A stretch of 64,000 nucleotides of DNA, taken from NCBI GenBank assembly GCA_047495785.1, contig JBLDXI010000042.1, positions 2,542,001 to 2,606,000 of the forward strand, in the 5' to 3' direction. A program made the position numbers and the translations under genes. This DNA comes from Lepidodermella squamata (Eukaryota; Animalia; Gastrotricha). Numbering within the stretch: position 1 is the stretch's first letter; each line of letters starts with the position of its first letter. The notes under the pieces are model-generated. The model made no database searches. It saw only the letters and a program-made list of their open reading frames with translations, and was not told the origin of the DNA. Shown in pieces: positions 8,669 through 46,629 of the stretch.

Positions 8669-11030
8669 AATGAAGAAGAAATAATGATAGAAATTCGAGT
8701 TTTATCTGACAATTTCGTTAATTTTGCTAATTTTCTGGCATTCAAAGGTCAGGTAGCTGGATTAATAAATTTCCGAAGAAATACGCACATAATGACACAT
8801 TTTTCGTCGTCGTTTTTCCGAGTAATTTTTTGCTTTCAACCATTTTTTTCCGTGCGCTGATTTTTTGGTTGTGAATCATGCACATATCGGCGCGTAGCCA
8901 TTGCGTCGCCTCCTGATCACGGCGTGACAGCACTTGCTTTCACGCTTCAGCGGATATTTAACTTCATGTCGAAATGGGCTTTTTCACAGCTTCAAGCATT
9001 TTTTAGCAGTGACAATAAGACCAAAATTCGCTTAAAACACACTGTTTTCAATTTTCAAACTCGTCAAACCGTTGTTACCTGATGTTATTCATACCGGCCG
9101 GTATTGGCAACGAGTGAATCCCGAATCCCTTTGGTGAGGCGTTTTCGATTTCAATTTCACCGACATGAAATCCGCAAACAATTTGAAGTCTTTGAAAATA
9201 ACGTCAGGTTTGCCAACTTTCTTACCAATCTCTTTGATGTTTCAAAAGTTTAATTTTAGCTGTTTTGATGCTGCGTGAGCCGATCGACACAAAACTCTGC
9301 GTTTCAAGTTTCAACCCGTCATTTATACAGAAGACAACGCCAAGAAGATTCTGTTTGTCTATTCTACCTCTCTCTGTTTAAATTTCATCTTGTAGATATC
9401 TTTGTTACCCTTTTGCCCGAAGGTTTTGCCGTTTTGCATGAGCCAGGGCCAATTTATTATATAATATTAATCTTTAAAGGCATCTAAAAACCTATTGGTT
9501 GCATTGGTTTCCTTTAAAGTTCATTTTCAAATTTCACTTGCGATCTTCTTTCGATCTGATTGCAATCTCAGCAGCCCTAGTTTTTAAATAATTAATCAAA
9601 ATTATTATACAACAAAAATAGAAAAAATCGTTTCTTGAAATATCTTGAAAAAAATTCTATTAAACAGTGGAGATTTGTGCTTCGTGTGGAATTAATGCTT
9701 CAATTTCCTTTTGTAAATCATTCAGCACAACGCTTCTGTCAGTTCACCTGTATATATTGTAAATATAATTAAAGTGCTATCATTTCCTCTCCTAACTGTA
9801 AATAGCCGTAGGTAATATGCCATCGCGCATTATATTTTTCTTCTAGTAATATGGATGGCTGAGTCTTGTCAAATTGTGTTCTATGTTCTATGTTACGCCT
9901 GACCTTGTATAATGTCTGTGAAAAATGTGCTGCTAAAGTCTCTTTCAACCGTGTCGAATCGTTCATCGATCGTCGACAATCCTTAGACTAATGTTTTATC
10001 TTTCATTGACCTAATTATTTCACTTTCCTCACTCCTCACTTCTCCTCACTTTCGTGTGCTTCTTCTGTTGATGCCTACTAAAATATTTAAAAGAACATGC
10101 ATTGTTCTGTCGAAATTGTATTTGATTTTTCCTCATTTCCTCATCATGTCTCGATTTCAATTTCTCCTTTGGACTGGCCACCTTGACCTTGCTGTCTATG
10201 ACGCCTGGCCACCATTCAAATTATTATGATGCTAAAAAAACTGTTGAGAATGATACAAAACTCGTGAGATAGAGCGCTAAAAGTGTCAGGTTTCGCTCTG
10301 ATTCTGTGAAAGCTACCTTTCATCTATTGAATGAATTTGATCAAAAGCCTTCGTGTCTCGATGACAAATTGTCAATTATTCGCATCGCCTATTCGTTTCG
10401 TGCGACACTGAACTAATTGCTCTGGCTGATATACAATTGTTTTTGCTCAAAAGAAATAAACTCACATTTGCTGCACAAAATTGTTTTCAATCGTTCATTT
10501 TTTATTTTTTTCCCTCATTTTCAAGTCAACAATATTTTTGGCTACTTGCATCATCGTGCAAATCAAACTGAGTAATAATGACACGTTGCGGAAGAAACGG
10601 AACATAAAATTCACGATTATTTGGAAGGTTTCGAAAATGCTTCGTGAAGTCAGTGAGGAAATAACGTTTTGAAAATGAGAGTCAAACTTAACACCGGCAC
10701 TTTTTTTAATGTTCTGCGACTACAACAACAATCGGGCGATAGGAGAAGCAGAAACTAACGTGAATAAACTAGAGTTGAGAGTTCATTTTGATATCACACG
10801 TGATTAAATGTTAAGACACCTGAATGCGTACTGGTTGTATTTCACGATAATGACTTCAAAGCAGATGATTTCATAATACTCTAATGAAGCGACTATTTTC
10901 GAGGTTTTAAAAAGTTCTCGTCTAACAAGGATGCAATTTTATTATAATCAGTTATAATATCATAAAAATCACGAAAAATGCTATAATATTTGCATATATT
11001 TATATATTGGTGAGGCATTCACAATTTCAC

Positions 11031-13911
11031 TCAACTAGCAGACAAATAATTGTGTATAAACGAGTTTAATTCGCCATCGACCCATCCGGCTCGGTTTCTC
11101 AGAATCTTCGCCTTGTTGTTGGCTTCCTCGACGGCGACGGTTCTTTGCACAACAGTGGTCAATTCAGTTTCCCACTCGTCCTTCACGCGGGAGGTAGCTT
11201 GAATAGCAGCTTGGCCAATCGATTGAACATGCGCTTGAACTTGATGAGCGCATGAAGCTGAAGTCAAATCAGCAACTTGTTGCAATTTCGTGGCACAATA
11301 GCCCGCATACTGCGATTTGAAGGCCCTTTCTTTCGCCCGAGTAGTCCAAGTAGCGCGTTCGTACATGTACAAGCCACCGTACATAGCGCCACCAACGACC
11401 AAGATCTTCCAACCAACCATTCTGAAGGCCAGAAAGCCGAACAACACGATTGCCATGCTCGATTTAGCCGCAGTTTCAGCCATGTTACTCACGACCAGAG
11501 CAGCTAAGGCACCATTCTTTTCTCCCAGGTTGTTGGCCAACGGGATATTCGCGGCTGATGAATTGCGGCGGAACCACTGTTCGTGAAATTTGTTCGCAGT
11601 CTTGTTCCAGCCGAACCATTTCTGAAGAATATTACTCAGCCCGAGACTGAAGTGAAATTCAATGTCCTCCGTGAAATCGCCGCATAAATTGTGGCAATCG
11701 ATTGTGTAGATGATACTCAAATCACGGTAACCAGCTGCGTTTGCAGACATAAGAACCGGGGCGATAACTTGCTGTGATAATTGTTGGCGCATGTCTTGAG
11801 GCACGATTGCTGTCAAATTATCACCGAGTTGCTTCTGAATCTCATCGACACTTTGCAATAAACGAGTTGAACAGCGGTGTTTCAAATTTCGACACAAAGC
11901 TGATTCAAGGTGCTCCATCAGTTCTTTCTTGTAAACGGCCAAAACAGCAGCATCTGAATGGAAAGGTCGTTCGAATTCGTCCAATAGAGCTGGGAGTCGC
12001 CGAATTTCGGCTCCAAGAGCAGTAGATACTTGTCGATTAACCTCATCACCTGAAAGATAGATAAAATTGTAAGTCACGGAAAATCGAATTAAGCGAATCA
12101 ATTTGTCTTAAGAAAACATCAGACCCGTCTTGAAGAAGATAAACTTGTCATTTAAAATCAAATCTTCAATTATCATCACAATGGAACTTGTATTGGCCAC
12201 GTCAGCCAGTGACGGATTAAAACATACCCAAATGAGAAATCTGCTTCTTGAATTCAGATTGAAGGCGGTGGACATTCTTTTCGAATTGCTCGATGCGTTG
12301 AACAAGCTCTTGGCGCCGTAGAATGAGTTCATTCCTAAAAACGTGCAAATTTTAGCAATTGCCGCATTATTGTTAAATCCCGACGTACTTTTTGTTACAC
12401 GTCTTTTCATAAGCCGAGTCCATGGCGCGGCGCAGGTCAGCGAGTAACGCCTTGCCACATTGAACATGCTGCTCGAATTTCGTTTGAATAGCAGTGTGAC
12501 TGATGCATTCTTCAAAGCGACGTTCGAATTCATCAAATGCCATAACGCGCTGCAAGTAGCCCTCCTGTAATGTACCCATGGGTGGCTGAATACCACGCTC
12601 TTGTTGAAGCCTATACGCAACATCGAAGAATAGAGAATTTCATTGGGAGATATCTTACATACCTGTAAGCGAGAGTCTCTTTGGAAGACACAAAGAAAAC
12701 GCGATTTTCCGCTTCAGAGCGCGTAACAACTTTCAATTCATCAACCAAAAAGCGAATATTGCGTTCCAAGTGTTGGCGCCGCACCTGAAAAATACCAAAT
12801 TTTATTTGATGATAAGTCATATTGCTCGCAACTCTTACCTGTTCCATAGTCTCTGGCTCGCCAGCAGATGCATCCCACCGGTTGTTCAAAATAAATACAT
12901 TAGGCTTCGAGAGGCGATCACTGACTTTGACAAAAAAGTTCTTCTCGGTTTGCATGACGGTAGATTCGGCATTGCTGACGAAAACAAAAACATCAGCGTC
13001 TAGACAGTATTTATCGATCCAAATATCGAAATCGGGCGATATATCGATGCCAGGACTGTCTACGAGGAGAACTTCTTCCTTCAACATTTGACATTTGCTT
13101 TTCGGCCAAATGATTCGGATCATTGCATTCGAGTCAGCTTTCTGCTCGCTCAGAGCATGAGCAAGCTGCGAGATAGACTGAAAAGGGCAACATATCAAGT
13201 AAATGATAGGCTGTGGCTGAAAGTTCTAACTTACTAAAATATTTTTTGGATCTCCGGAGTCTTCTGTGAGAATGTAACCGTCCTGTGTATTGCTACCTTC
13301 AACCTGGATAAAACAGTTGGTGGTATGACCGAGACCAGTGGGAAGAAGCTTCTCGTGTAGCATGGCATTGATAGTTGAACTTTTTCCATTTGAAGTTCTG
13401 AAAATAAAGCAGGGTATTAGTATTTGAGCCTGCTGACATATTTTGTGTGCATCAATTTACACCTAACATCAGACCCGTCTTGAAGAAGTAAAACTTGTCA
13501 TTTAAGATCAAACCTTCAATTATCATCACAATAGAACTAATATTGGTTAGCAAACAAACAATTTAAAAATTACCTTCCAAAGAAGACTACTTTCATTTGG
13601 TTGCGGCCGATAACTTCAGTGATTGCTTTCACTTTATCACAGTAGGATTGCAGCTTTTCTACGTAGCCAGCTTCAAAATGCTCAGGACATCCTACGATGA
13701 AGTCTTGTGCTTCACAGATGAAGGCAGTAGTCTCTTTAAACGCTTCGTTGATCTTTTTCTTCGCATGACCGAAGATCTTTAACGGACTATTAACAGTTTC
13801 GCGCTGACCATTTGTCTGGAGCGCAGCAGTCCTTGATATGGGCAAGGAGGTGCCATTAGCAGAAGCGTCCTGATGTATTCCAGTTGATGATGATCGAGTG
13901 AAACCAGACAT
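11031..13911 (-). CDS. MFN: Mitofusin (Marf/fzo-like dynamin-family GTPase), ~7 exons
   Basis: MKVVFFGR|TSNGKS P-loop, [16 protein letters not shown] hairpin [30 protein letters not shown]. Confidence 0.95.
12115..12184 (-). ncRNA. SNORD21: Box C/D snoRNA, SNORD21/U21-like, copy 1 (intronic)
   Basis: Box C GTGATGA (12179-12173); guide TTCAAGACGGGT; box D CTGA (12122-12119). Guide is complementary to the conserved LSU rRNA sequence ACCCGTCTTGAA; ~70 nt upstream of the 3' splice site. Confidence 0.9.
13465..13534 (-). ncRNA. SNORD21: Box C/D snoRNA, SNORD21/U21-like, copy 2 (intronic)
   Basis: Near-identical copy offset by 1350 nt in intron 1; box C 13529-13523, same guide, box D 13472-13469; ~71 nt upstream of the 3' splice site. 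Confidence 0.9.
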
Positions 13912-16712: not shown

Positions 16713-17967
16713 TTATGGCTCGGTAAGCAGTGGCTTCAATTCATACATTTTTTCATCGGAATATTTAGCGCCGCCATTTTCGTCGCGTTTATCGGTTTTC
16801 GCCATCGAAAACAAATACACGGTGGCCGTCGCAAGTATCGATCCGGCGAGTGGTCCGAACCAGTAAACCTGTTAAATTCGCCGCGGAACGATTCATTAAT
16901 GAATAGTAAACATTGTTAAAATTTAAATCGAAAAAATTTACGTGCTGATGGTTCCAACAGCCCCAGACGATAGCTGTGATGAATGATTAACGATCAATCG
17001 ACAGTAATATTTCATAAGGGACAAACCTGGCCCAACAGATCTAGCCGGGTTCATACTATCAAAATATAAATATAACTTCGATTATTCAGAGTTAATATGT
17101 ATTCCGCACCTTCCACCGGAAAAAGGCCCCTAAAAATTTGACAGTTTAGCTAATGTAAAATGGCAAAATTCAGATTTTATTTACCGCAAAGTAGATCAAG
17201 GTTGTCATAGCCACGAAGATACCGAATATTAGCGGAATTGGGGGTCGATTAGTTGGTCTACCGCTGAGTTCAATCACGTCGCAAATTGCTAAAATTGTGA
17301 AAACCAGTACGAAGGTCGCGAAGCATTCGATGAAAATAGCTTGAAAATCGGCTGAAAAATAGCAAAAATATTCAAAGCAAACTAGTGTTATTACTGTCTG
17401 TTGTACATATCAAAGGAGAAGGATTCGTGCAGAGGAAGGGTCCATCAGCGCCTGGAATTGACCTAAGAACGGCCGATAGGGCAAAGGATGCGACCATCGA
17501 GCCAACACACTGGCTCACAGCGTAGCCAATGGTTCGCATAACGGAAATTTTTCCGAGGAGCATGAAAGCGACAGAAACGACTGGATTGATATGACCGCCG
17601 GAAACGGGTCCTATCATTAGTACAATACCGCTTAAAATTGCGCCAACTGCTAGGCTGTTTCGCAGTAAATGATCCGTAAAAACGACCGAATCGATAGCTG
17701 CGGCTAGAGTTCCGTTGGGTTTCGAACTTCCATATACGACAAGTTCCTCATTTTCGCCCTGTAGCGATGACTCATCTGTGGGATAGCTGGCGGTGACAAA
17801 TCCGAATCCACAGGCCAGGAAAATCAACATGAATGTTCCTTGGAAAATTAATAATTAGACTGAGTAATTAGTCCGCTGTTGTTGTTACCGATGAATTCGG
17901 CTAAGAAATAAATTGCCAACCGTGGCGACTCCTCATCGTCCCAAATTTTGATTTTGGACCGTCGCAT
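16713..17967 (-). CDS. Aquaporin (MIP family, AQP8-like filter residues), multi-exon
   Basis: LAEFIG|TFML, SGGHINPVVS, GPFSGGSMNPARSVGP, VYWFGPLAG; includes ~20-32 nt exons. Confidence 0.92.
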
Positions 17968-18525
17968 TCAAGTTTCAGGAGCAATACAAACTGGGCAACA
18001 GATGAAGTGAAATGAGGCGTGAACGAGTTGTTAATCAACTTATTCGCGTTTAGCCAAATCCTAAGCAGCAGCCCAGCTGTGCCGGCAATCCTGCAGGCTT
18101 CAGACTTGCGATTATCTGCTCCAACTTGATTTATAAGCAGATCATGAAACACGCCCTCACAATATTTCGCTACTAGTACCGTCTCGCGAATGGGCAAAAT
18201 CTCAGGTTCCACGTTTATAATTCTCGTTTTATTATCAAATTAATAAATTAAATTATTAAATTATACAATTGTAAATTGCAGATTATTTGTGCAATTTTCA
18301 AATATACGTGGGTATTTACAACTTTTCCTTGAGCTGAAAATATATACAGTTCTGTCGTTTCGAGTCGATTTACATCAGAGGTATGTAATCTAACAAAAAT
18401 ATAGCAGAATTCCAGATCAACAACTTGCTACTGAGAATGAAAAAGGATAGGCCTTGCTGTTGAAAATTCCAACTATCTTCCCACACAGCAAGAATAGCTC
18501 TGCTTTTCGTTGGATCTATATAATT

Positions 18526-19792
18526 TTACAATAGATTTAGGCAAATAATCACAGAGAGAATCAGTAGAAAGGAATTCGTTAGACAGTGATGACTTTCACC
18601 CGAGCCTGCTAGAATTCTGAGTGCTCTCCATATAGGCGGAGGCTCTTGTGTGATACCCATAGTTTTCGCGAAATCCGGCAGCGCAGCGTATGGGTCATTC
18701 GAAACATAGGGCAGCATTGAAGGCTGAACTACAGTCGGTTTGACCATGCGTAGCCGAGCATTCTGGTGGTTCAAATAAGCCCCGCTATTCGAGTGATCAA
18801 TCTTCCTCGACTGCGGTGGCCGGTTCGATTGACTAGTAGGCCCACCCCCCTTCCGACGGCTGAGACTGGGCGCCCTAGCTGCGGACCGCTCGACAAGATC
18901 CGCCAGGAGGGACGGCGAGGGTGGCACTAAAGCATCGCCGAATAAATCATTAGGCTGCGGTACCATCAAAACTGACGGTTCAGTGCCCGGATAGTAATCC
19001 AACGATTCTTCATACGGCCGGCCGTATTGGCCAATTTGGTCCATGTACCTAATAGGCTGATGGAGTGGGCCGATAGTTGTTACCCTATCCAGCTCATCCG
19101 GAAAGTCCGTCGACGGGCGAGGCGGAGGAGTCAATACTATTACGGAATCGCCGGATTTTTGCATAATATTATTTTTTGTTTGCTTCGGCGCTCTAACAGT
19201 TGCATTAAGGTCATTGCAATTGTCATCCGTGCAGCATTGAACAGAAAGAACATCGACGTAAACAGCGGTTTCTGAACCAAGGTAGATGTGCGTACTCTTC
19301 CCTAGCAGTTTTTTCTGGGCCTCGCACGCTTCGAGCGACATACACATTTTAAGGGTGAGATCTTCGTTAAAAGTGGTGTCGTAATAAATGACTTGGGAAC
19401 AGGCAGGCGTGACAGATGACAGGGCTAACGTACTGTCGATTTCATTAATCGAATAATCTGGATTGGCAGGTTTCGGTTCCAACTCGCAAGACATAGGAAA
19501 TCCTAAGTCCGGAACATTCAGAGCTCGAGAAAAATACGAATTGTGCGAGTTTCCGTAGGTTCCACAAGCCGTGCTAAAATGAAGTTGAAATTAATTGATA
19601 TTAAATTGTTTGATTCGAGGTCGAACCTTGATTCTCCATTGCAGCCGCAACAGACGTAGCATTGAAGAGCTGGAAAAATTGGGTTGATGATAAATTGATC
19701 AAGTAGGAAAATTCTTTACCGAAATTCGGCTCTGGAAATTCGAGAGTAGTGATTAATGTAATTAGGAACCATTTTTTAACGTAATTAGCCAT
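18526..19792 (-). CDS. Ly6/uPAR (three-finger) domain protein with Pro-rich stalk and GPI-type tail
   Basis: N-terminal hydrophobic exon; LQCYVC...CCTDDNCN signature; C-terminal SGESHHCLTNSFLLILSVIICLNLL. Confidence 0.8.
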
Positions 19793-23600: not shown

Positions 23601-26600
23601 ACAGTGATCTCACCGCGTTTTCGGGAAATCCTAACCGTGTGCCATTTATTCAGCGCCAAAGTCGGCGAAATCACGCCGTGAATCGGTTTCGCGCCCATTC
23701 CTAACCCGGCTGAAGCTTCGAGGTACAACTGCGAATTTCTCATAGCGATACAGAAGAAATCAGCGTCTGATTCCTGGCTGCCCTTGTACAATATGCGGCC
23801 GTTTTCGCTCTCAGGTCTGAACGTCATTTCAATGCTCAAATACTCGGCTGGCTTTGTAATTCCGTCCTTGACCTTCATGTAAGATGAAATTTGGCGGAAT
23901 GACGGCAGTCTGCGTTCGATGTAGAGACGAAGAGGCAGAGTTGCTGAGCCGTGTGAGTTAGTCGCGACGCATTCGTACTCAGACTCATCGGCGAGACGGG
24001 CCTCGGAAATTTCGAGAATATTATCAGCAACCGTAGCTCGAGATGTCGTGATAGGTCTGCCGCCTTTCAACGACCAGGAGTAGACGATATCAGGGTCTGA
24101 ACTCGCGAGGTAGGAGCCGCAATCGAGGCGAACATTCGAACCGACCAGGGCGGTGTGGACGTCCTCAGGCGGGTCGAATCTGGGCGGTCCGCCGAGAATC
24201 ATGATTCGGATACTGCTCGACGCTCGCCCGACTGAGTTCTCAGCTTCGCACGTGTAGTGACCGCCGAAATCAACCGAGGTGATGCGGATCTTCAAAAAGC
24301 CTTCAAATCGTTCAATATCGCTTTCCATCGCACTTGACGGGCCTGTCCAGGTGATAGCGGGCTGCGGCTGGCCGGTTGCCGAGCAGTTGAGGGCCAAATA
24401 TTCGCCGTACATGACAGTGTAAACGCTTTCGGTCGGGTAAATCGTGACTGTTGGCGGGATTCCGGTGATTTGGACGTCGATGCGGCCGATGAAAACAAGG
24501 CCACGGATCGATACTTCGCAAGCAAATGATCCAGAATCGGCAACAGTTGGCGAATCTAAGCTGAAAAATTGAAAAATCCCAGCTTAATAAATTTCAAATT
24601 TTAATAAATTAAAAAATGACGATTTTTGTGACCTTTAAAATTTCCGCTTTAATAATATAGAAAATAGGTTTACATGTAAACTGCTTCGCCCTGATGAACC
24701 AAGCGATCGCCACGATACCATCTGTAATCCACGATTTCAACATCCCGAGGCACTCCAGTGACCGCGCATCGCATTTCACACGGCTGGCCAGCAATAGGAC
24801 GTGGCGGGCGGACTTCAACGTTAACTCGAGGCTCTGATAATTTCGAAATAAATCGATAAAATCACGAAAAAATTCAAGAAAATTACCATGAACGTGAACG
24901 AGGAAGTTCCGTTCGATTGATCCAGCGTCGTTGGTAACCGAGCATTTGTAACGGCCACCGTCGGTTCTGCGAACCTGGGCGACTTCGTAAGTCGCAGTTT
25001 CGCGGCCCACGCTTCGGCCTTCCTTCAGGAACACGTAAATCAAATGGCCATAGCCGCGAGCGCTACAGTCCAAAAACAGCCGTTCGCCAACAAACAAATT
25101 GATCTCTTCATCGGCGTCGTTCGAAAACTGAGGCCGTTCAACCACCTTCAGGGTGTAACGATCAGCGGCACGGTTACCGTAGCCGTCATCACCGTTGCAA
25201 ACGTAGATGCCACTGTGGCTTGGGCTGAGAGATCGGAAAATCAGCTGGTTATTTTCAGCCGAGATTCCGTCCCAGCTTCGCCCGTCTTCGCGTTGGAAAC
25301 TGATTTGAATACGACGGCCATCTGTTTGAAAATCAGTAAAATAATTGTATAATTCGCCAGGAAATTCGGAAAACTATAGATAATTCTATATTACATTTTT
25401 GAACACAAAAATTACAGAAAAAATCACACATTTTCAGCTTTTTCAAGCCGAAATTATAGCTAGAATATTGTGTCACGCAGATAGAAAGAGGGCAAGCAAT
25501 GATTTTATAGAGTGTTCTGATTACATGATAAGTGTGGAATGTCTTGTTCTTTCTGCTTTTTTATGTATGAAATGTGCGAAGAGTGGTGCGCATTGAATTA
25601 AAGCGAAATGATCACTCAAAACGGATTTTCATGTAATGAAAAAAGCTAATGGTGTTTTTTGTATACCTTGACCTTCAAGTGCACCTTGGTGGCCTTCTGC
25701 ATCGAGTTATGTAAAATTAATTGTCAGTAAAACAGTTCAAGTATAAGGAAACACGAGACAAATTGTGCTAAAAATTCGGCGAAAATTTACCTCCTCCGCA
25801 AGTCATCACGAAATTACGGCCTTCGAACGCATCGCCCTCGGCCACAATTTTAACGGCGAAATTGCGAATGCCACGATGGGTCAGATCGACGCGGGCTGTT
25901 CCGGAGTTTCCGTGTTCGTCATTAGCCGAGCACTGGTAGCCGCCGTTATCGGCATCGTCCCAACGTTGGATAATCAGGGTCGAACAGACGCGATCTGAGC
26001 AACGAGCATTCGAGGCGCGAGAATCACGGGGTGAGACAGTTCCGCGAGGGAACGTCCACTCGGCATGAGACAACACAATGCCATTCGAAGGGACGCCTTA
26101 AAAAATCCAAAATTACCACAAATTAAGGTGGGTAAAAAATTAATTACAGTGAAGGCTGATTTCCTCGCCCAAATAGATACGTTCTGGCCGTCGGATGTTA
26201 ACCTGGAACTGCAGCATTTCTAGGAAAATATATAGCTGAAATGGGGTTAAAATTCGGAATCGGGACAAACTGATCATAACGGTAATCGAAGCTTCAGCCA
26301 CAACTTTGCCATCGCTGATTGTCTTGATCTGGCAAACATAGCCGCCTGCATCGTTCTGGTCGAATCGAGTCAGCGATAGAATGCCAGTTCGTTCGTCGAA
26401 GCTGTGCTTTTCTGGGATCGGGCGTCCCCGCTCGCGAACCCAACCGAGAACAAGCGACGATGGCAAACCGTCAGCTTTGCATGTCAACTCGCCCGAACCG
26501 CCGGCTTGAATGTCCTCAGGGCCGTGGATTGTCACAACTTGAGATGAAAAAATAACGCGGGAAGACAAATTATTAATCAAAGTCAATCACGATATAAATC

Positions 26601-29600
26601 AGCATGAGAAACACCTCGAACGCTTGAGACGAGTCTATTTTGTTGTTGCAAACATATTACATAGTTTTATTTTTTCGAGTTGTGTTTCAGACTTCACGAA
26701 GAAATAACATCGCACAGAGCAAATACGTGAATATTATGTAACGGCTCGTTGAAAGCAGAATTTTATTGGTAGTGACATAGCTGAGAGAAAAAAATAGTTT
26801 CAAGCTTTGAAAAAAATCAATCGGGTAAAATTTTGAACGGTTCAGAAATAATAACGAATTCATCGCGCGAAAAATACTAAATTAACAAGGCGGCTACAAA
26901 AATAAGAGCACAACTGCTCGCGGCAACGAATAGCGATGATGATGAAGATGATGATGCGGAGAACAAGGATCGAATTGAAGATTTCTGCGGCTTTTTCGTC
27001 GTTTTGTCGTCTTCTACATTGTAATCCTCGGCGGACATTTGCGGCGAGAACAACGGCTGGTCATCAAGGTAGATTTCGCCGTTTTTCGACTTGACTTGCG
27101 ACGCGATTTGAGGCTCATTTTGCGGACTGTCGCCCAAATCTGCGACAACCACTACTGTTTCGCTGTCATCATCATCCCCAGCATCATCTACAGGTTCGTT
27201 GGTTTTTGTTTCACTGTTCAACTTGGCATCAGGCAATTGATTTACAAAAGAAACCGAGGTTAAGGAAGAGGCAAACGAAGAACTGCCAGGTGGCGAGGCT
27301 AAGAAGGCTACTGCAGAGTCTTTTTTAACTAAATTTATGTCTTTTTCATCATTATAATTGCTGGTTTTATCGTCGGGACTGTCCAGATCGATGATTCCTG
27401 GATGGGTAAAAATAAACATTCAATTTAAGGTCGATTTCATCTTCGGCAAGCCATCAGCTCAGCTGGTTAATCATCAATCACGGATCGAACAGCGGCATTA
27501 GCAGCGGCGGAGAACTCAGCCCAGTCATCGTGTGAATTAAGCCACAAAATTAAAGTGAAAACGCTCAAATTTTGAGCTTCAACCTATCACGGTAAACCGC
27601 TAACGAGTGATACAACAAAAATGGGACCGCAGCCAGTTAGATTGATTAAAAAGCAAGCTACCGAAGCCTAAAAGTGATTTTTAAGGCCGCGGTCCCTGTA
27701 TTAAGTCGAAGCTTCACACGTTTTGAGCATTAATGGATTGAATGAAAGGTCAAGGACTTATCATGCTAATCACAATAGACCACATTAAATCACCGAGAGA
27801 TACTTAAAAAACGAGGATATTTTTTTTAAATAGTGTTGACGGTTAAAATACGAAGCGATTAATCGTCTACAAAATTTCCACGAAAAGCGCTTTAGCTTGG
27901 CAATATTGCGGAATGACCATCAAAACTTGCTAACCTCCGTTTCGTTTTCAATTAATTAACAAACACAAATCGAACGCAAGGTTGGCGATAGCAGTTCAAG
28001 TCGACGATGGCTGATTACAATTAATTAATTAATAAAACGTGAACATAAACCAAAAAATAAGCTGAAAATAAACGCGTCGTTCATTCGAGGTGATTTTTCA
28101 TATCATGCGATTGCAACGTAAAATAATAAGCGCATGATTCATTTTTTGAGATTTTTCGAAAATAATTTTCGAACTTACCGACTACTGATTTCGTGATGCG
28201 GTTCGAGGTATCGCCACGTGGGTAGCAAGCGTAGAGACCGGCGTGGTAAGACTGAAGTGAGTTGATAACAATGCGAGTTTCGCCATCGGTCTGGAAAACT
28301 TCGACGTCATTGCGGCTTCGAGTGGCCGGCGAGTCGATTTCCAAGATCTTGTCACGAGCTCCTGAGGTGGCCGTGCACTTGATAGTTACTCGGCTGCCAA
28401 CTCGCAGCGGCTCGGGCTCAACTGTCATTTGCAGGCGGACCGGGTCCTGAACGACTTCAATGTTCACACTGACATTGGCCTTCTTCTCATTTCGACCGCG
28501 TCCGTTCCGGCCCGAGCAAACAAAAGTGCCGCGATCAACCAGGCTGATCGAGTTGATGAGTAACTGGGCGACAGTTCGCTCTTCCTGGGGGTTGGCCAAC
28601 GGTGAGAAGAACAGAGGCGCGTCGGAGCCTTGATGCGTGATCTGCAGCGGGCGGTGAGGTTCGGCCTCAAATTGGGCACCGGGCTTCGGGAAACCCTCAG
28701 CCACGCACCACAGCTCGAGTCGCTCGCCAACTTTCAACTTGATATTCTCGTTTTCACCCAACCGGCGCGGGCCGCGAGGCGAGACTAGTTCGATGTACAC
28801 TCGCAGCGAGTTGAGGCGAATATCTAGAAAATTATGAAAAAAAGAATTAAAAATACGCTAAAAATACTAAAATTTGTGCTCAGTCAGTCATAAATTTATG
28901 GAAAATTCAGATAACTATTCGGAAAATTTTGGAATAAATAGAAAAATTTGGATTTAGAGCACAGAAAATTTTCGAATTAGGTTCCGCTACAAATAAAATT
29001 TTCAAATTCGTAAAAACTTACGATAAATAGTGACATCAAGAGGCGAGCTGGCAACACGGCGACCATCGCTGCGTCGTTTAGCGACGCAAAGCCTTGAAAT
29101 GTGGGTTGGCGATTGGCGAGTAGCCTTCAAGACGAATGAGTTGCTGTTCGAGATGACACGATCAACACTGTAACGAAAATTCAATATTATTTCGGGAAAA
29201 ATTAGGTAAAAAAAGAAACGAACTCATTGGCATCGACCCAAATGATATCGATATCATCGATCATTTCTTCACCCTTGATTTGACACGTGAATTCGATTTC
29301 CTGACCTTCACGGATGATTTGCTTGTTGCCAGGGAAAACTTCAAGCTCGACATCTGAAATAATTTAGAAATTAAGAGTCAAAATAAGGGAATATACTGTA
29401 GGAAAAATAGTACTTCGCAGGCCATTGTTCGGCTTTTTCATGTCACGCCGATGATGAAGCGCGACTTGCTCATAATAGTCAGCCTCGACGAAAACGAAGG
29501 CGCTGATTATGAGCAAGCAAAGGTGACCAGTTGAACTGATCATCGTTGACGCAATATATCACCCGCTTATTTGAACTAAATGCTACACTAACGAAAAAAA

Positions 29601-44660: not shown

Positions 44661-46629
44661 CTAGGTGCTTTTGGTCTGCGAATTTTGAACTTCGTCAGTC
44701 TCCCCAGGGACTTGTCGGTGTGTTAATGTTGACTCAGGCTCGTCATTCTTTGCGGCATTGAAAACCTGAAAATAATGATAAAAATTGTGAAAATGAAATT
44801 TTCAATTTTCGCAAAATTACGTCTTCCTCAGATTGCTTGTTCTGATGAGATTCTGCAACTTCTTCCTCTTCATGGCCTTCACTGCCGTCGCTATCACTTG
44901 GTTCAAGGACGCAATCGTTAGCGGGACTCGTGCTAACTGACTGCCGACGCATTCTTCGGTAGACCAGCAGGAGGCCGTTGTATTCAGGGCGTTTTCGGAT
45001 CATTTTCATCAAGTCGTCGAAAGATACCAATCCGTCACGATCCGTATCCATCAAGTTCATAAGATGCTCCACCTCCGATCGCTCCATGCCGTAGTTGTGA
45101 CCGAGCAGGCGAGCCAAGTCATCCTCACTAATCCTTCCATCACCATCACTGAGAAAATTCGAAATTAATAAATCAGAGTAAAATTCAATTTAATCACTCA
45201 TACCTGTCAAATAGTTCGAATATGACTTTCCAAGAATTTTCCGACTCACTTGGCTCAGAAATAATGCTCAAACCAGAGATGAAATCACGGAAATCAATCT
45301 GACCGCTGTTGTCCTTATCGTAAAGAGCAAACAGCTCGCGCACAGGTTCGATGACTGGGAGTGAGAGGTGTTTTGCTAATTCAGCCAAGGTGATTTTACC
45401 GCGCTTCGTTTTGTCGATTTGAGAGAAACGAGACAGCATATTTTGCAAATCCTCATATGATAAACCCAGGCGGCGACGAACAGCGTCGAACCCGACTAGA
45501 GCGGCACTCATTGGATATCCCTTCGATTCGGCAAACATCATAAGGCGGCAATCTTCGAACGTGTGATCAGTAGTCGGGATTCCCAACTTTTCAGCCATCA
45601 AAGCACGGACGTTCTTCGCGTAGAGGTAGCAGTCTTTTATTTCTGCCGGTGAAGGCTTGTAAACAGGCAGAAATTCAACAGTGGCGCGGTTGATCGGCTG
45701 ACACAGGGTAAACCATACGCAAGCGCCAGCGCCTTGGCCTTGAAAGGTCCACGAGTATGTGTCAAGTTTGTTGTGGAATCTCAACAAAATCGGTTGAACC
45801 GGGGCGCCGGGCATAAAAGCGCCAGGTTTAAATGTGATCAAGCAAGAACGATTCGTGCATGTTCCTTCGGGGAACAATAGCAAGTGACGATTGTAACCTG
45901 GATGGCCACTTTGAATCGCAGCGACGCGTTTCTTTATACGATCAATCGTTGCCGTTCTTGATGCCCGCTCAGCGCGCGAGACAAAGATCGGGCGGAGGCT
46001 TTCGATCAGTTCTAGGTCATGCAAATTAATAACTAGTTTTGAAAATAAGAGTGAAACTTACTTCCAAAACAAGGCATGCTTTTGTTTTCGATTCTCGACA
46101 CAACAAATGGAAGTTTAGCGTGAGGAAGCATTAAAGCATCAACGATTGTGGAATGCGGCGCGGCAACGATGACAGGGGCTTCAGATGCGGGAGCCAATTC
46201 TCCAACAACCTCGACGGAAAATCCAAGACAGAAGAAGAGTAAGCGACCTGCGACAGAAATAAAATAATAATGACAGAGCAAACCATAGGAAAACTTACCC
46301 AACGTAGATAGTATTCTGTTGTACATGGCGTAACGCTTAGGATTAGAAATAGGTGCATCAGGGTCCTTGTCGCCAGACCCTCTCACCTCTAGAAAGGCGA
46401 CGAACCAAATCAGAAAGCTGATGAATAACGACAGAACAAATCGCAAAGGAGCGATTGAGATCGACATTAGCGCGAACTAAAAACTCGCGAAATAATTCAT
46501 AATTATGATACGAGTGGAATCACTCACGATAAAAATGTCTTTCACTCCAGGCTGAAGCCTCTGAACGAAAGGATTAACATTAGGCAACTTTCCAGCCGCA
46601 GGTTTCGCAGGTTCTTCTTCCGATTCCAT
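44661..46629 (-). CDS. LPCAT: Lysophosphatidylcholine acyltransferase 1/2-like with EF-hands
   Basis: NPFV, APHSTIVD (HxxxxD), FPEGTCTN, FKPGAF; EF-hands DKDNSGQIDFRDF and DTDRDGLVSFDDL. Confidence 0.93.

Follow-up and report, generated by a model that had tools for sequence, protein, structure and literature searches.

The stretch of DNA described here, a window of 64,000 nucleotides (nt) from the gastrotrich Lepidodermella squamata (assembly GCA_047495785.1, contig JBLDXI010000042.1, positions 2,542,001 to 2,606,000), carries a perlecan gene on its minus strand, and one intron of that gene holds a further exon of 521 nt. Here, we report that this exon is real, transcribed, conserved in a related species and very probably translated, and we tentatively propose (probability roughly 45%) that it is an alternative perlecan C-terminus, which is also served by an intronic promoter of its own. 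The host gene is identified as perlecan (HSPG2) by its domain order and by its nearest Atlas cluster ('Heparan sulfate proteoglycan 2', score 0.98). Pfam matches to its minus-strand exons agree with the order known from perlecan (LDLa, then immunoglobulin [Ig], laminin B with laminin EGF, a series of Ig repeats and lastly LamG/EGF), with Ig at 35312-34509, LDLa and Ig at 34422-33322, Laminin_B at 33104-31618, laminin EGF and Ig at 31243-30341, Ig at 30368-29958 and again at 28800-28180, Ig from 26537 and from 25145, Ig followed by LamG-EGF-LamG at 24412-22259, and LamG at 21407-20691.

The intron in question measures 1,641 nt and separates two perlecan exons of phase 1. Upstream of it lies an exon with two Ig domains (28179..28823, minus strand; Pfam Ig_2/Ig_3/I-set), bounded in RNA by the junctions 28823->29022 and 28179->26537; it ends in ATC ACG AAA TCA GTA GTC G followed by gtaagt (ITKSVV-G), its last base, 28179, leaving phase 1. 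The canonical next Ig exon (26272..26537, minus strand), also of phase 1, has a Pfam Ig match and is joined in RNA to 28179.

The candidate exon (coding part, 26877..27397, minus strand; phase-1 acceptor, 172 full codons and TAG) was delimited from the sequence, its open reading frame (ORF), a mismatch-free RNA contig, codon usage and an orthologous ORF. Its acceptor reads tttacccatccag|GAATCATCGAT, with the AG at 27399-27398 behind a good pyrimidine tract, and the exon starts at 27397. The frame is open from 27419 to a TAG at 26879-26877, acceptor to stop spanning 521 nt, and because a TGA closes it just 8 codons upstream of the acceptor, the ORF matches the extent of the exon. Across a predicted 28179->27397 joint (…GTAGTCG|GAATCATCG), G and GA would form a Gly codon, followed by IIDLDSPDDK, in phase 1 like the flanking Ig exons (predicted junction peptide, …SVVGIIDLDSPDDK). 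The exon peptide has a net charge of -16, 29 Asp and Glu residues, 38 Ser/Thr and a DYNVED motif. It ends in SASSSSSSSLFVAASSCALIFVAALLI and the stop codon, with zero residues past an 18-amino-acid (aa) hydrophobic run (LFVAASSCALIFVAALLI, 26880..26933 in translation) that follows SASSSSSSS, and a pattern search placed an AATAAA (26762..26767) 110 nt past the stop codon. Acceptor, frame, phase, tail and AATAAA had been put forward in the initial annotation of this DNA; re-read directly, its sequence statements on the exon were all borne out.

A 172-codon open frame would arise by chance at about 4e-4 given the exon's own composition and at 6e-5 given that of the intron. Codon usage in the exon frame scored +0.156 per codon (other frames, -0.34 and -0.41), a value that real exons also show and that none of the intron windows tested reached (maximum, 0.007). 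The 119 codons upstream of the first in-frame Met were scored on sense codons separately and gave 0.099, compared with a non-coding null of -0.18 +/- 0.056 and a coding expectation of 0.17; none of 20,000 null draws scored as high (0/20,000), and the chance of codons 1-119 all being open is about 1e-3 to 4e-3. Since these codons look coding, translation seemingly starts near the acceptor and not at the late Met.

RNA evidence was taken from one run (X1), available as contigs, which drop rare variants and whose depth is a crude measure. X1, labelled 'RNA?', is clearly cDNA (complementary DNA), because introns are bare and eight stretches, whose CT..AC ends are GT..AG when read on the minus strand, are missing from its contigs. 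The canonical joint 26537/28179 lies in a 543-nt contig ('skips 1641', CT..AC) with 178 nt on the upstream, shorter side, and the next joint after the canonical Ig exon is 26219/26271. The candidate exon is covered from 27396 to 26870, with no mismatch, by a 562-nt contig whose remaining 35 letters fall on 27968-27934; this joint, 27396/27934 ('skips 537', CT..AC with the cut at +1), defines an intron of 537 nt with GT..AG ends (27398..27934, minus strand). The acceptor at 27397 is used in RNA, and its partner is an intronic mini-exon with the donor GAG|GTTAGC after 27935. Bins of X1 are empty at 27969-28178 and at 26540-26869, and the binned depths are fully explained by the contigs. The intronic transcript is thus the main or only source of the exon in the X1 sample, and most exon RNA there starts inside the intron, near 27970-28012, although contig depth is crude and rare forms would be hidden.

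The exon contig itself ends at 26870, 7 nt past the stop codon, at a T5 run (T6 in X2, genomic DNA of a close relative, organism B, diverged by ~1%), with no loose poly(A) letters and with ~120 nt to the AATAAA bare; the contig could have broken at this polymorphic homopolymer, or the RNA could have its 3' end nearer. Joints reported as 'opposite strands' also occur within Ig exons of X1 (25910/26021, 25992/26096 and 26150/26300; region 25910-26300, minus strand) and are probably assembly artefacts or hairpin cDNA.

The mini-exon (27935..28012, minus strand; conserved island AGCCATCGTCGACTTGAACTGC…) is covered by RNA over 27968-27935, its 5' limit being approximate, and is probably a first exon together with a core promoter. 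In the frame of the 521-nt exon, the spliced nested RNA reads TGA AAA CGA AAC GGA GGA ATC ATC: traced back through the mini-exon, the frame meets a TGA (27950-27948) five codons ahead of the joint. In this transcript, an ATG first occurs in frame at codon 120 of 172 (MSAEDYNV…, 53 aa), behind eight out-of-frame ATGs. As read from its sequence, the observed nested transcript would be unable to translate the long frame from an AUG by itself, and it supplies no signal peptide. An ATG-started or signal-peptide first exon with a good phase-1 donor was sought in this intron in both species, and none was found.

A related species was reached through the neighbouring Ig exon (P0002, 74% identity), and three ENA metagenome contigs (L001-L003) provided its whole orthologous perlecan locus. 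The orthologous intron keeps both parts, the mini-exon island and the acidic ORF, in the same intron and on the same strand. The ORF of L001 has 182 codons (11299-11849, open from 11289; from the acceptor, the frame counts 184 codons, and 173 in the window), and its best-placed acceptor AG, at 11297-11298, is of phase 1 and gives Gly (g|gc). Its peptide has a net charge of -21 and 36 Ser/Thr, carries DYNLED where the window has DYNVED, and has the hydrophobic end LFRLLLLLLLSLCYHSSPW; in both species, the most hydrophobic 15-aa window of the peptide is at the extreme C-terminus. The codons of DYN[VL]ED differ between the species, synonymous changes (tac/tat, gac/gat) included. The related species has accordingly retained the exon, as an acidic ORF that ends in a hydrophobic C-terminus and lies in the corresponding intron, and on the sequences compared, what is conserved is architecture, position, strand and phase, not peptide sequence. 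As in the window, the frame traced through the L001 mini-exon is closed (TAA, 10932-10934). The L001 perlecan gene as a whole spans only ~14 kb, its introns thus being much shorter than those of the window; a mitochondrial carrier gene and a RING-finger gene (17640-19566) follow it on the opposite strand.

The nested transcript might instead be non-coding RNA or a side product of promoter or enhancer activity in the intron, in which case the long frame would be fortuitous or a relic and would make no protein. The observed RNA, with no start codon for the long frame and many short upstream ORFs, agrees with this, as do the lack of a peptide homologue in 1.84 billion representatives or in a word search and the divergence of the two peptides (24% identity between window and L001; best BLASTP E-value, 0.055). 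We nevertheless consider a non-coding RNA improbable. The two species have open frames (172 and 182 codons) that agree in intron, strand and phase, and each is improbable by chance (~5e-5 for the L001 ORF); codon usage is frame-specific in both (L001, +0.179; non-coding maximum, 0.059). Of the six substitutions that separate X2 from the window exon, four are synonymous, at third positions, and two replace a residue (S>G, V>L), and the sole indel is an in-frame GAT (Asp) insertion, compared with indels of 1-2 nt in the surrounding intron. Among three samples of the related species, ~10 differing events were counted in the intron and 0 in the 551-nt exon. Charge, Ser/Thr content, DYN[VL]ED and the terminal hydrophobic run are also conserved. 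Judged from sequence comparison, codon usage, the 4:2 ratio of synonymous to non-synonymous changes and the zero polymorphism in the relative all point to a translated exon.

Further relatives were searched for in several ways. A scan of JGI metagenomes with an alignment of the Ig exon yielded no further relatives, the DNA pattern of the conserved island yielded four GC-rich unrelated contigs with no tblastn match, and a protein search with a very strict E-value cut-off returned only the same relative. For the tail peptide itself, a word-index search gave no homologue, the sole phmmer match among the 1.84 billion representatives was a repeat protein judged spurious (P0001), and there was no Pfam match; by exact look-up, neither the 180-aa ORF nor the 53-aa Met-started ORF is on record in public assemblies.

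Between window and L001, the mini-exon island (L001 10893-10965) stands out as an ungapped block in an intron that otherwise hardly aligns. The window reads AG|CCATCGTCGACTTGAACTGC… with donor GAG|GTTAGC, and L001 reads AG|CCGTCATCGACTTGGTCTGC… (10895-10965) with donor GAG|GTTGG. A conserved intronic start exon spliced to the 521-nt exon is firmly in place. The strongest non-coding conservation in the intron covers 27969-28012 of the window (minus strand) and 10865-10915 of L001 and begins ~30 nt upstream of AGCC. The conserved stretch upstream of the mini-exon (TTAATT…ATTGTRAT…AGCCRTCRTCGACTTG), just downstream of which RNA coverage starts, looks like the TATA-like box and initiator region of a putative intronic promoter. 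As a common promoter motif the island was rejected, its matches in the window being no more than chance. Pairing of mini-exon and exon in RNA was rejected as well: a 14-nt exon stretch (GCAAGTCAAGTCGA on the RNA; 27086-27099 against 27991-28004) is 86% complementary, and this is probably chance because it is not found in L001.

In another reading, the mini-exon is an internal cassette of perlecan; in both species an AG precedes the conserved island. Splicing from 28179 to the AG at 28012-28011 would give perlecan a short Cys-x4-Cys tail (AIVDLNCYRQPCVRFVFVN and stop) and reduce the 521-nt exon to mere 3' untranslated region (UTR); the phase-1 peptides, both ended by a stop codon, are alike (window, AIVDLNC…C[VI][RK]F; L001, AVIDLVC…CIKF). 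Read as codons, however, the island keeps an identical codon at all six conserved 'residues' (6/6), compared with 31-36% in real exons between these species (P about 1e-3), so that the constraint lies on nucleotides, as for a promoter or leader, and not on a peptide. A 1-nt A-run polymorphism inside the island, seen in the related-species samples, is in line with the nucleotide-level reading. RNA coverage ends at 27968, inside the supposed cassette, donor 28179 shows no branch, the L001 region before the AG is purine-rich, and the conserved long ORF would be left unexplained. The mini-exon was thus rejected as a short coding tail of perlecan, on its nucleotide-level conservation and on the RNA coverage that ends inside it, and we regard the cassette as very improbable.

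A more serious contender, although an unlikely one, is an independent nested gene, for which perlecan is merely the host and the mini-exon transcript is the messenger RNA of a small acidic tail-anchored protein with a cytosolic N-terminus. This is the sole transcript structure observed, at a level comparable with the perlecan exons; mini-exon, upstream region and donor are conserved at the nucleotide level in the relative, as expected of a promoter and 5' leader, and a 5' exon that is 5' UTR would be expected to tolerate an in-frame stop. One hydrophobic segment, placed at the very C-terminus, suits a tail-anchored protein, and the exon contig leads into the intronic mini-exon, where coverage ends. 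Initiation would then fall either on a late AUG or on a non-AUG codon early in exon 2, such as the CTG (near 27372) in the GAT-CTG-G common to both species, neither of which has an AUG in the leader ahead of it. The transcript's own sequence does not, however, offer a complete ORF with a start codon, and no in-frame AUG is conserved: codon 120/172 in the window stands behind its eight out-of-frame AUGs, and the first in-frame ATG of L001 is codon 34, behind an upstream ORF, a position not common to both species. With codons 1-119 open and coding-like, the start would have to be near the acceptor and would require rare non-AUG initiation, while the shared GATCTGG block is, by our estimate, short enough for a chance match. 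Identity of phase with the host exons would, moreover, be a 1-in-3 coincidence.

Translation of the exon as a perlecan C-terminus is most likely in our view because its frame has no usable start codon and opens at a phase-1 acceptor like those of the flanking Ig exons. No source of an open phase-1 frame other than the perlecan donor was found, and with that donor the absent AUG, the phase and the fit of ORF to exon are all explained. In the proposed mechanism, donor 28179 would be spliced to 27397 in transcripts ending at the exon's own poly(A) site, and the product would be a truncated perlecan that lacks the last Ig repeats and domain V (LamG-EGF) and that may be held at the membrane by a glycosylphosphatidylinositol (GPI) anchor or by a tail-less transmembrane segment. 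The same exon would also be the second exon of the conserved transcript that starts at the mini-exon and its promoter (about 28012-27935). On this account, the 521-nt stretch is a genuine protein-coding terminal exon under selection, encoding a fast-evolving acidic, Ser/Thr-rich stalk and a C-terminal hydrophobic anchor signal.

Several points weigh against the exon being a perlecan C-terminus. The initial annotation had predicted an exon spliced from the perlecan donor; the exon is transcribed and is spliced exactly at the predicted acceptor, but the junction 28179->27397 is absent from the contig joints of X1, where donor 28179 is joined only to 26537, and a minor isoform could be missed by contigs. 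The same annotation had named a nested transcript with its own promoter as evidence to the contrary, and the observed pattern, 27397 joined to 27935, matches it, while contigs are also compatible with a minor perlecan isoform. X1 contigs pass unbroken through donor 28179 and acceptor 27397, and since unbroken de Bruijn contigs at both sites leave no branch, 28179->27397 is not a major junction in X1. Contig depth is 32.5 in the exon and 18.8-38.5 in perlecan, with no step-down of perlecan across the site; because exon depth is not below perlecan depth, most exon RNA does not come from perlecan transcripts, contig depth being a poor measure. All of this evidence is limited to that single run and to contigs. 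Two things are needed together, a promoter inside the intron and a perlecan splice that is rare or tissue-specific, and none of the searches above returned a homologue of the exon peptide outside the two related species. By inspection, the tail resembles a GPI signal or a tail anchor, and because the hydrophobic run is fairly strong (about -2.6 kcal/mol for the window run, summed by hand on the Hessa scale), a plain membrane span or tail anchor is also possible.

By eye, both tails look like a GPI signal: omega to omega+2 hold small residues, and a polar spacer leads to a hydrophobic C-terminus of 12-20 residues with no cytoplasmic residues. The window tail reads …F-S-A-S-SSSSSS-LFVAASSCALIFVAALLI and stop (e.g., S-A-S, SSSSSS and the 18-residue hydrophobic run), and the L001 tail reads …Q-A-S-S-LRFPICNSRH-LFRLLLLLLLSLCYHSSPW and stop (e.g., A-S-S, LRFPICNSRH and the hydrophobic run), with <=5 residues after the hydrophobic run in both. 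An endoplasmic reticulum signal peptide on the same polypeptide would come only from the perlecan N-terminus, through the predicted junction. The acidic Tyr motif (EDYNVEDD in the window, EFDYNLEDPD in L001) resembles tyrosine-sulfation sites; sulfation there, a tentative lead, would favour the secretory route. More doubtful than the alternative C-terminus itself is the fuller picture, a membrane-tethered perlecan that would consist of domains I-III and five or six Ig repeats from the start of domain IV, followed by an acidic stalk, possibly sulfated on tyrosine, and a GPI or tail-less anchor that replaces domain V; an alternative last exon conserved in two species, together with a conserved intronic promoter element, would provide the switch.

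Elsewhere in the window, a 354-codon open frame (18526-19590, minus strand) lies just downstream of the last perlecan LamG exon; it has no Pfam match and a weak codon-usage signal (0.007-0.084), and an unknown gene or a long 3' region could both be conceived. The neighbouring genes are a mitofusin (11031-13225, minus strand; Fzo_mitofusin domain, E 4e-43) and an acyltransferase with EF-hands (45194-46476, minus strand; LPCAT-like). A scan of the 64,000 nt against Rfam found no family.

Perlecan is regarded as a basement-membrane proteoglycan that is secreted and that contacts cells by way of receptors for domain V at its C-terminus. If the proposed C-terminus is made, this secreted proteoglycan would become a cell-surface one, fixed in the membrane without domain V. 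Its heparan sulfate and LDLa/laminin-like modules would then be displayed on the cell surface, in a manner similar to that of glypicans and syndecans. After transmembrane agrin, it would be the second example of a large matrix proteoglycan that has a form bound to the membrane. Among the titles and abstracts of the reviews returned by a full-text literature search, none reports a GPI-anchored perlecan, and the term GPI refers there to other proteoglycans. Should the perlecan interpretation fail, the locus would still be a clean case of a conserved ORF without a start codon in the only transcript seen, so that either a rare host-gene splice or non-AUG initiation would be at work. The exon is confined to its lineage (no homologue outside close relatives), which limits the general reach.

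Three known systems invite comparison. Like nested tail-anchored genes, the transcript starts on the same strand in a host intron, encodes a single hydrophobic segment at the extreme C-terminus and has no signal peptide; unlike in them, no AUG of the long frame is conserved, the first exon closes that frame, and identity of phase with the host exons would be unexpected. Among invertebrate perlecans, short isoforms of UNC-52 lack domain V or domains IV-V. Several perlecan isoforms of Caenorhabditis elegans UNC-52 are functional, and what the shorter ones do is unclear (PMC6266596). Like these short forms, the proposed product belongs to an invertebrate perlecan and would stop within the domain IV Ig repeats, without the LamG/EGF domain V; they are secreted matrix proteins with no described membrane anchor, whereas the tail added here is anchor-like. 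In NCAM-120 and the H form of acetylcholinesterase (AChE-H), an alternative last exon swaps the C-terminus for a GPI signal. For attachment of NCAM-120 through phosphatidylinositol, PMC2120321 lists He et al. (1986, EMBO J) among its references. The perlecan locus differs from these in that the host-donor junction is not observed and the exon has its own intronic start exon, and in its long (about 150 aa), acidic and lineage-specific stalk and putative lipid anchor. It shares with NCAM-120 and AChE-H an in-phase alternative terminal exon, a candidate here, found within an Ig-Ig intron, with its own AATAAA, a stalk, small residues, a terminal hydrophobic run and no cytoplasmic tail.

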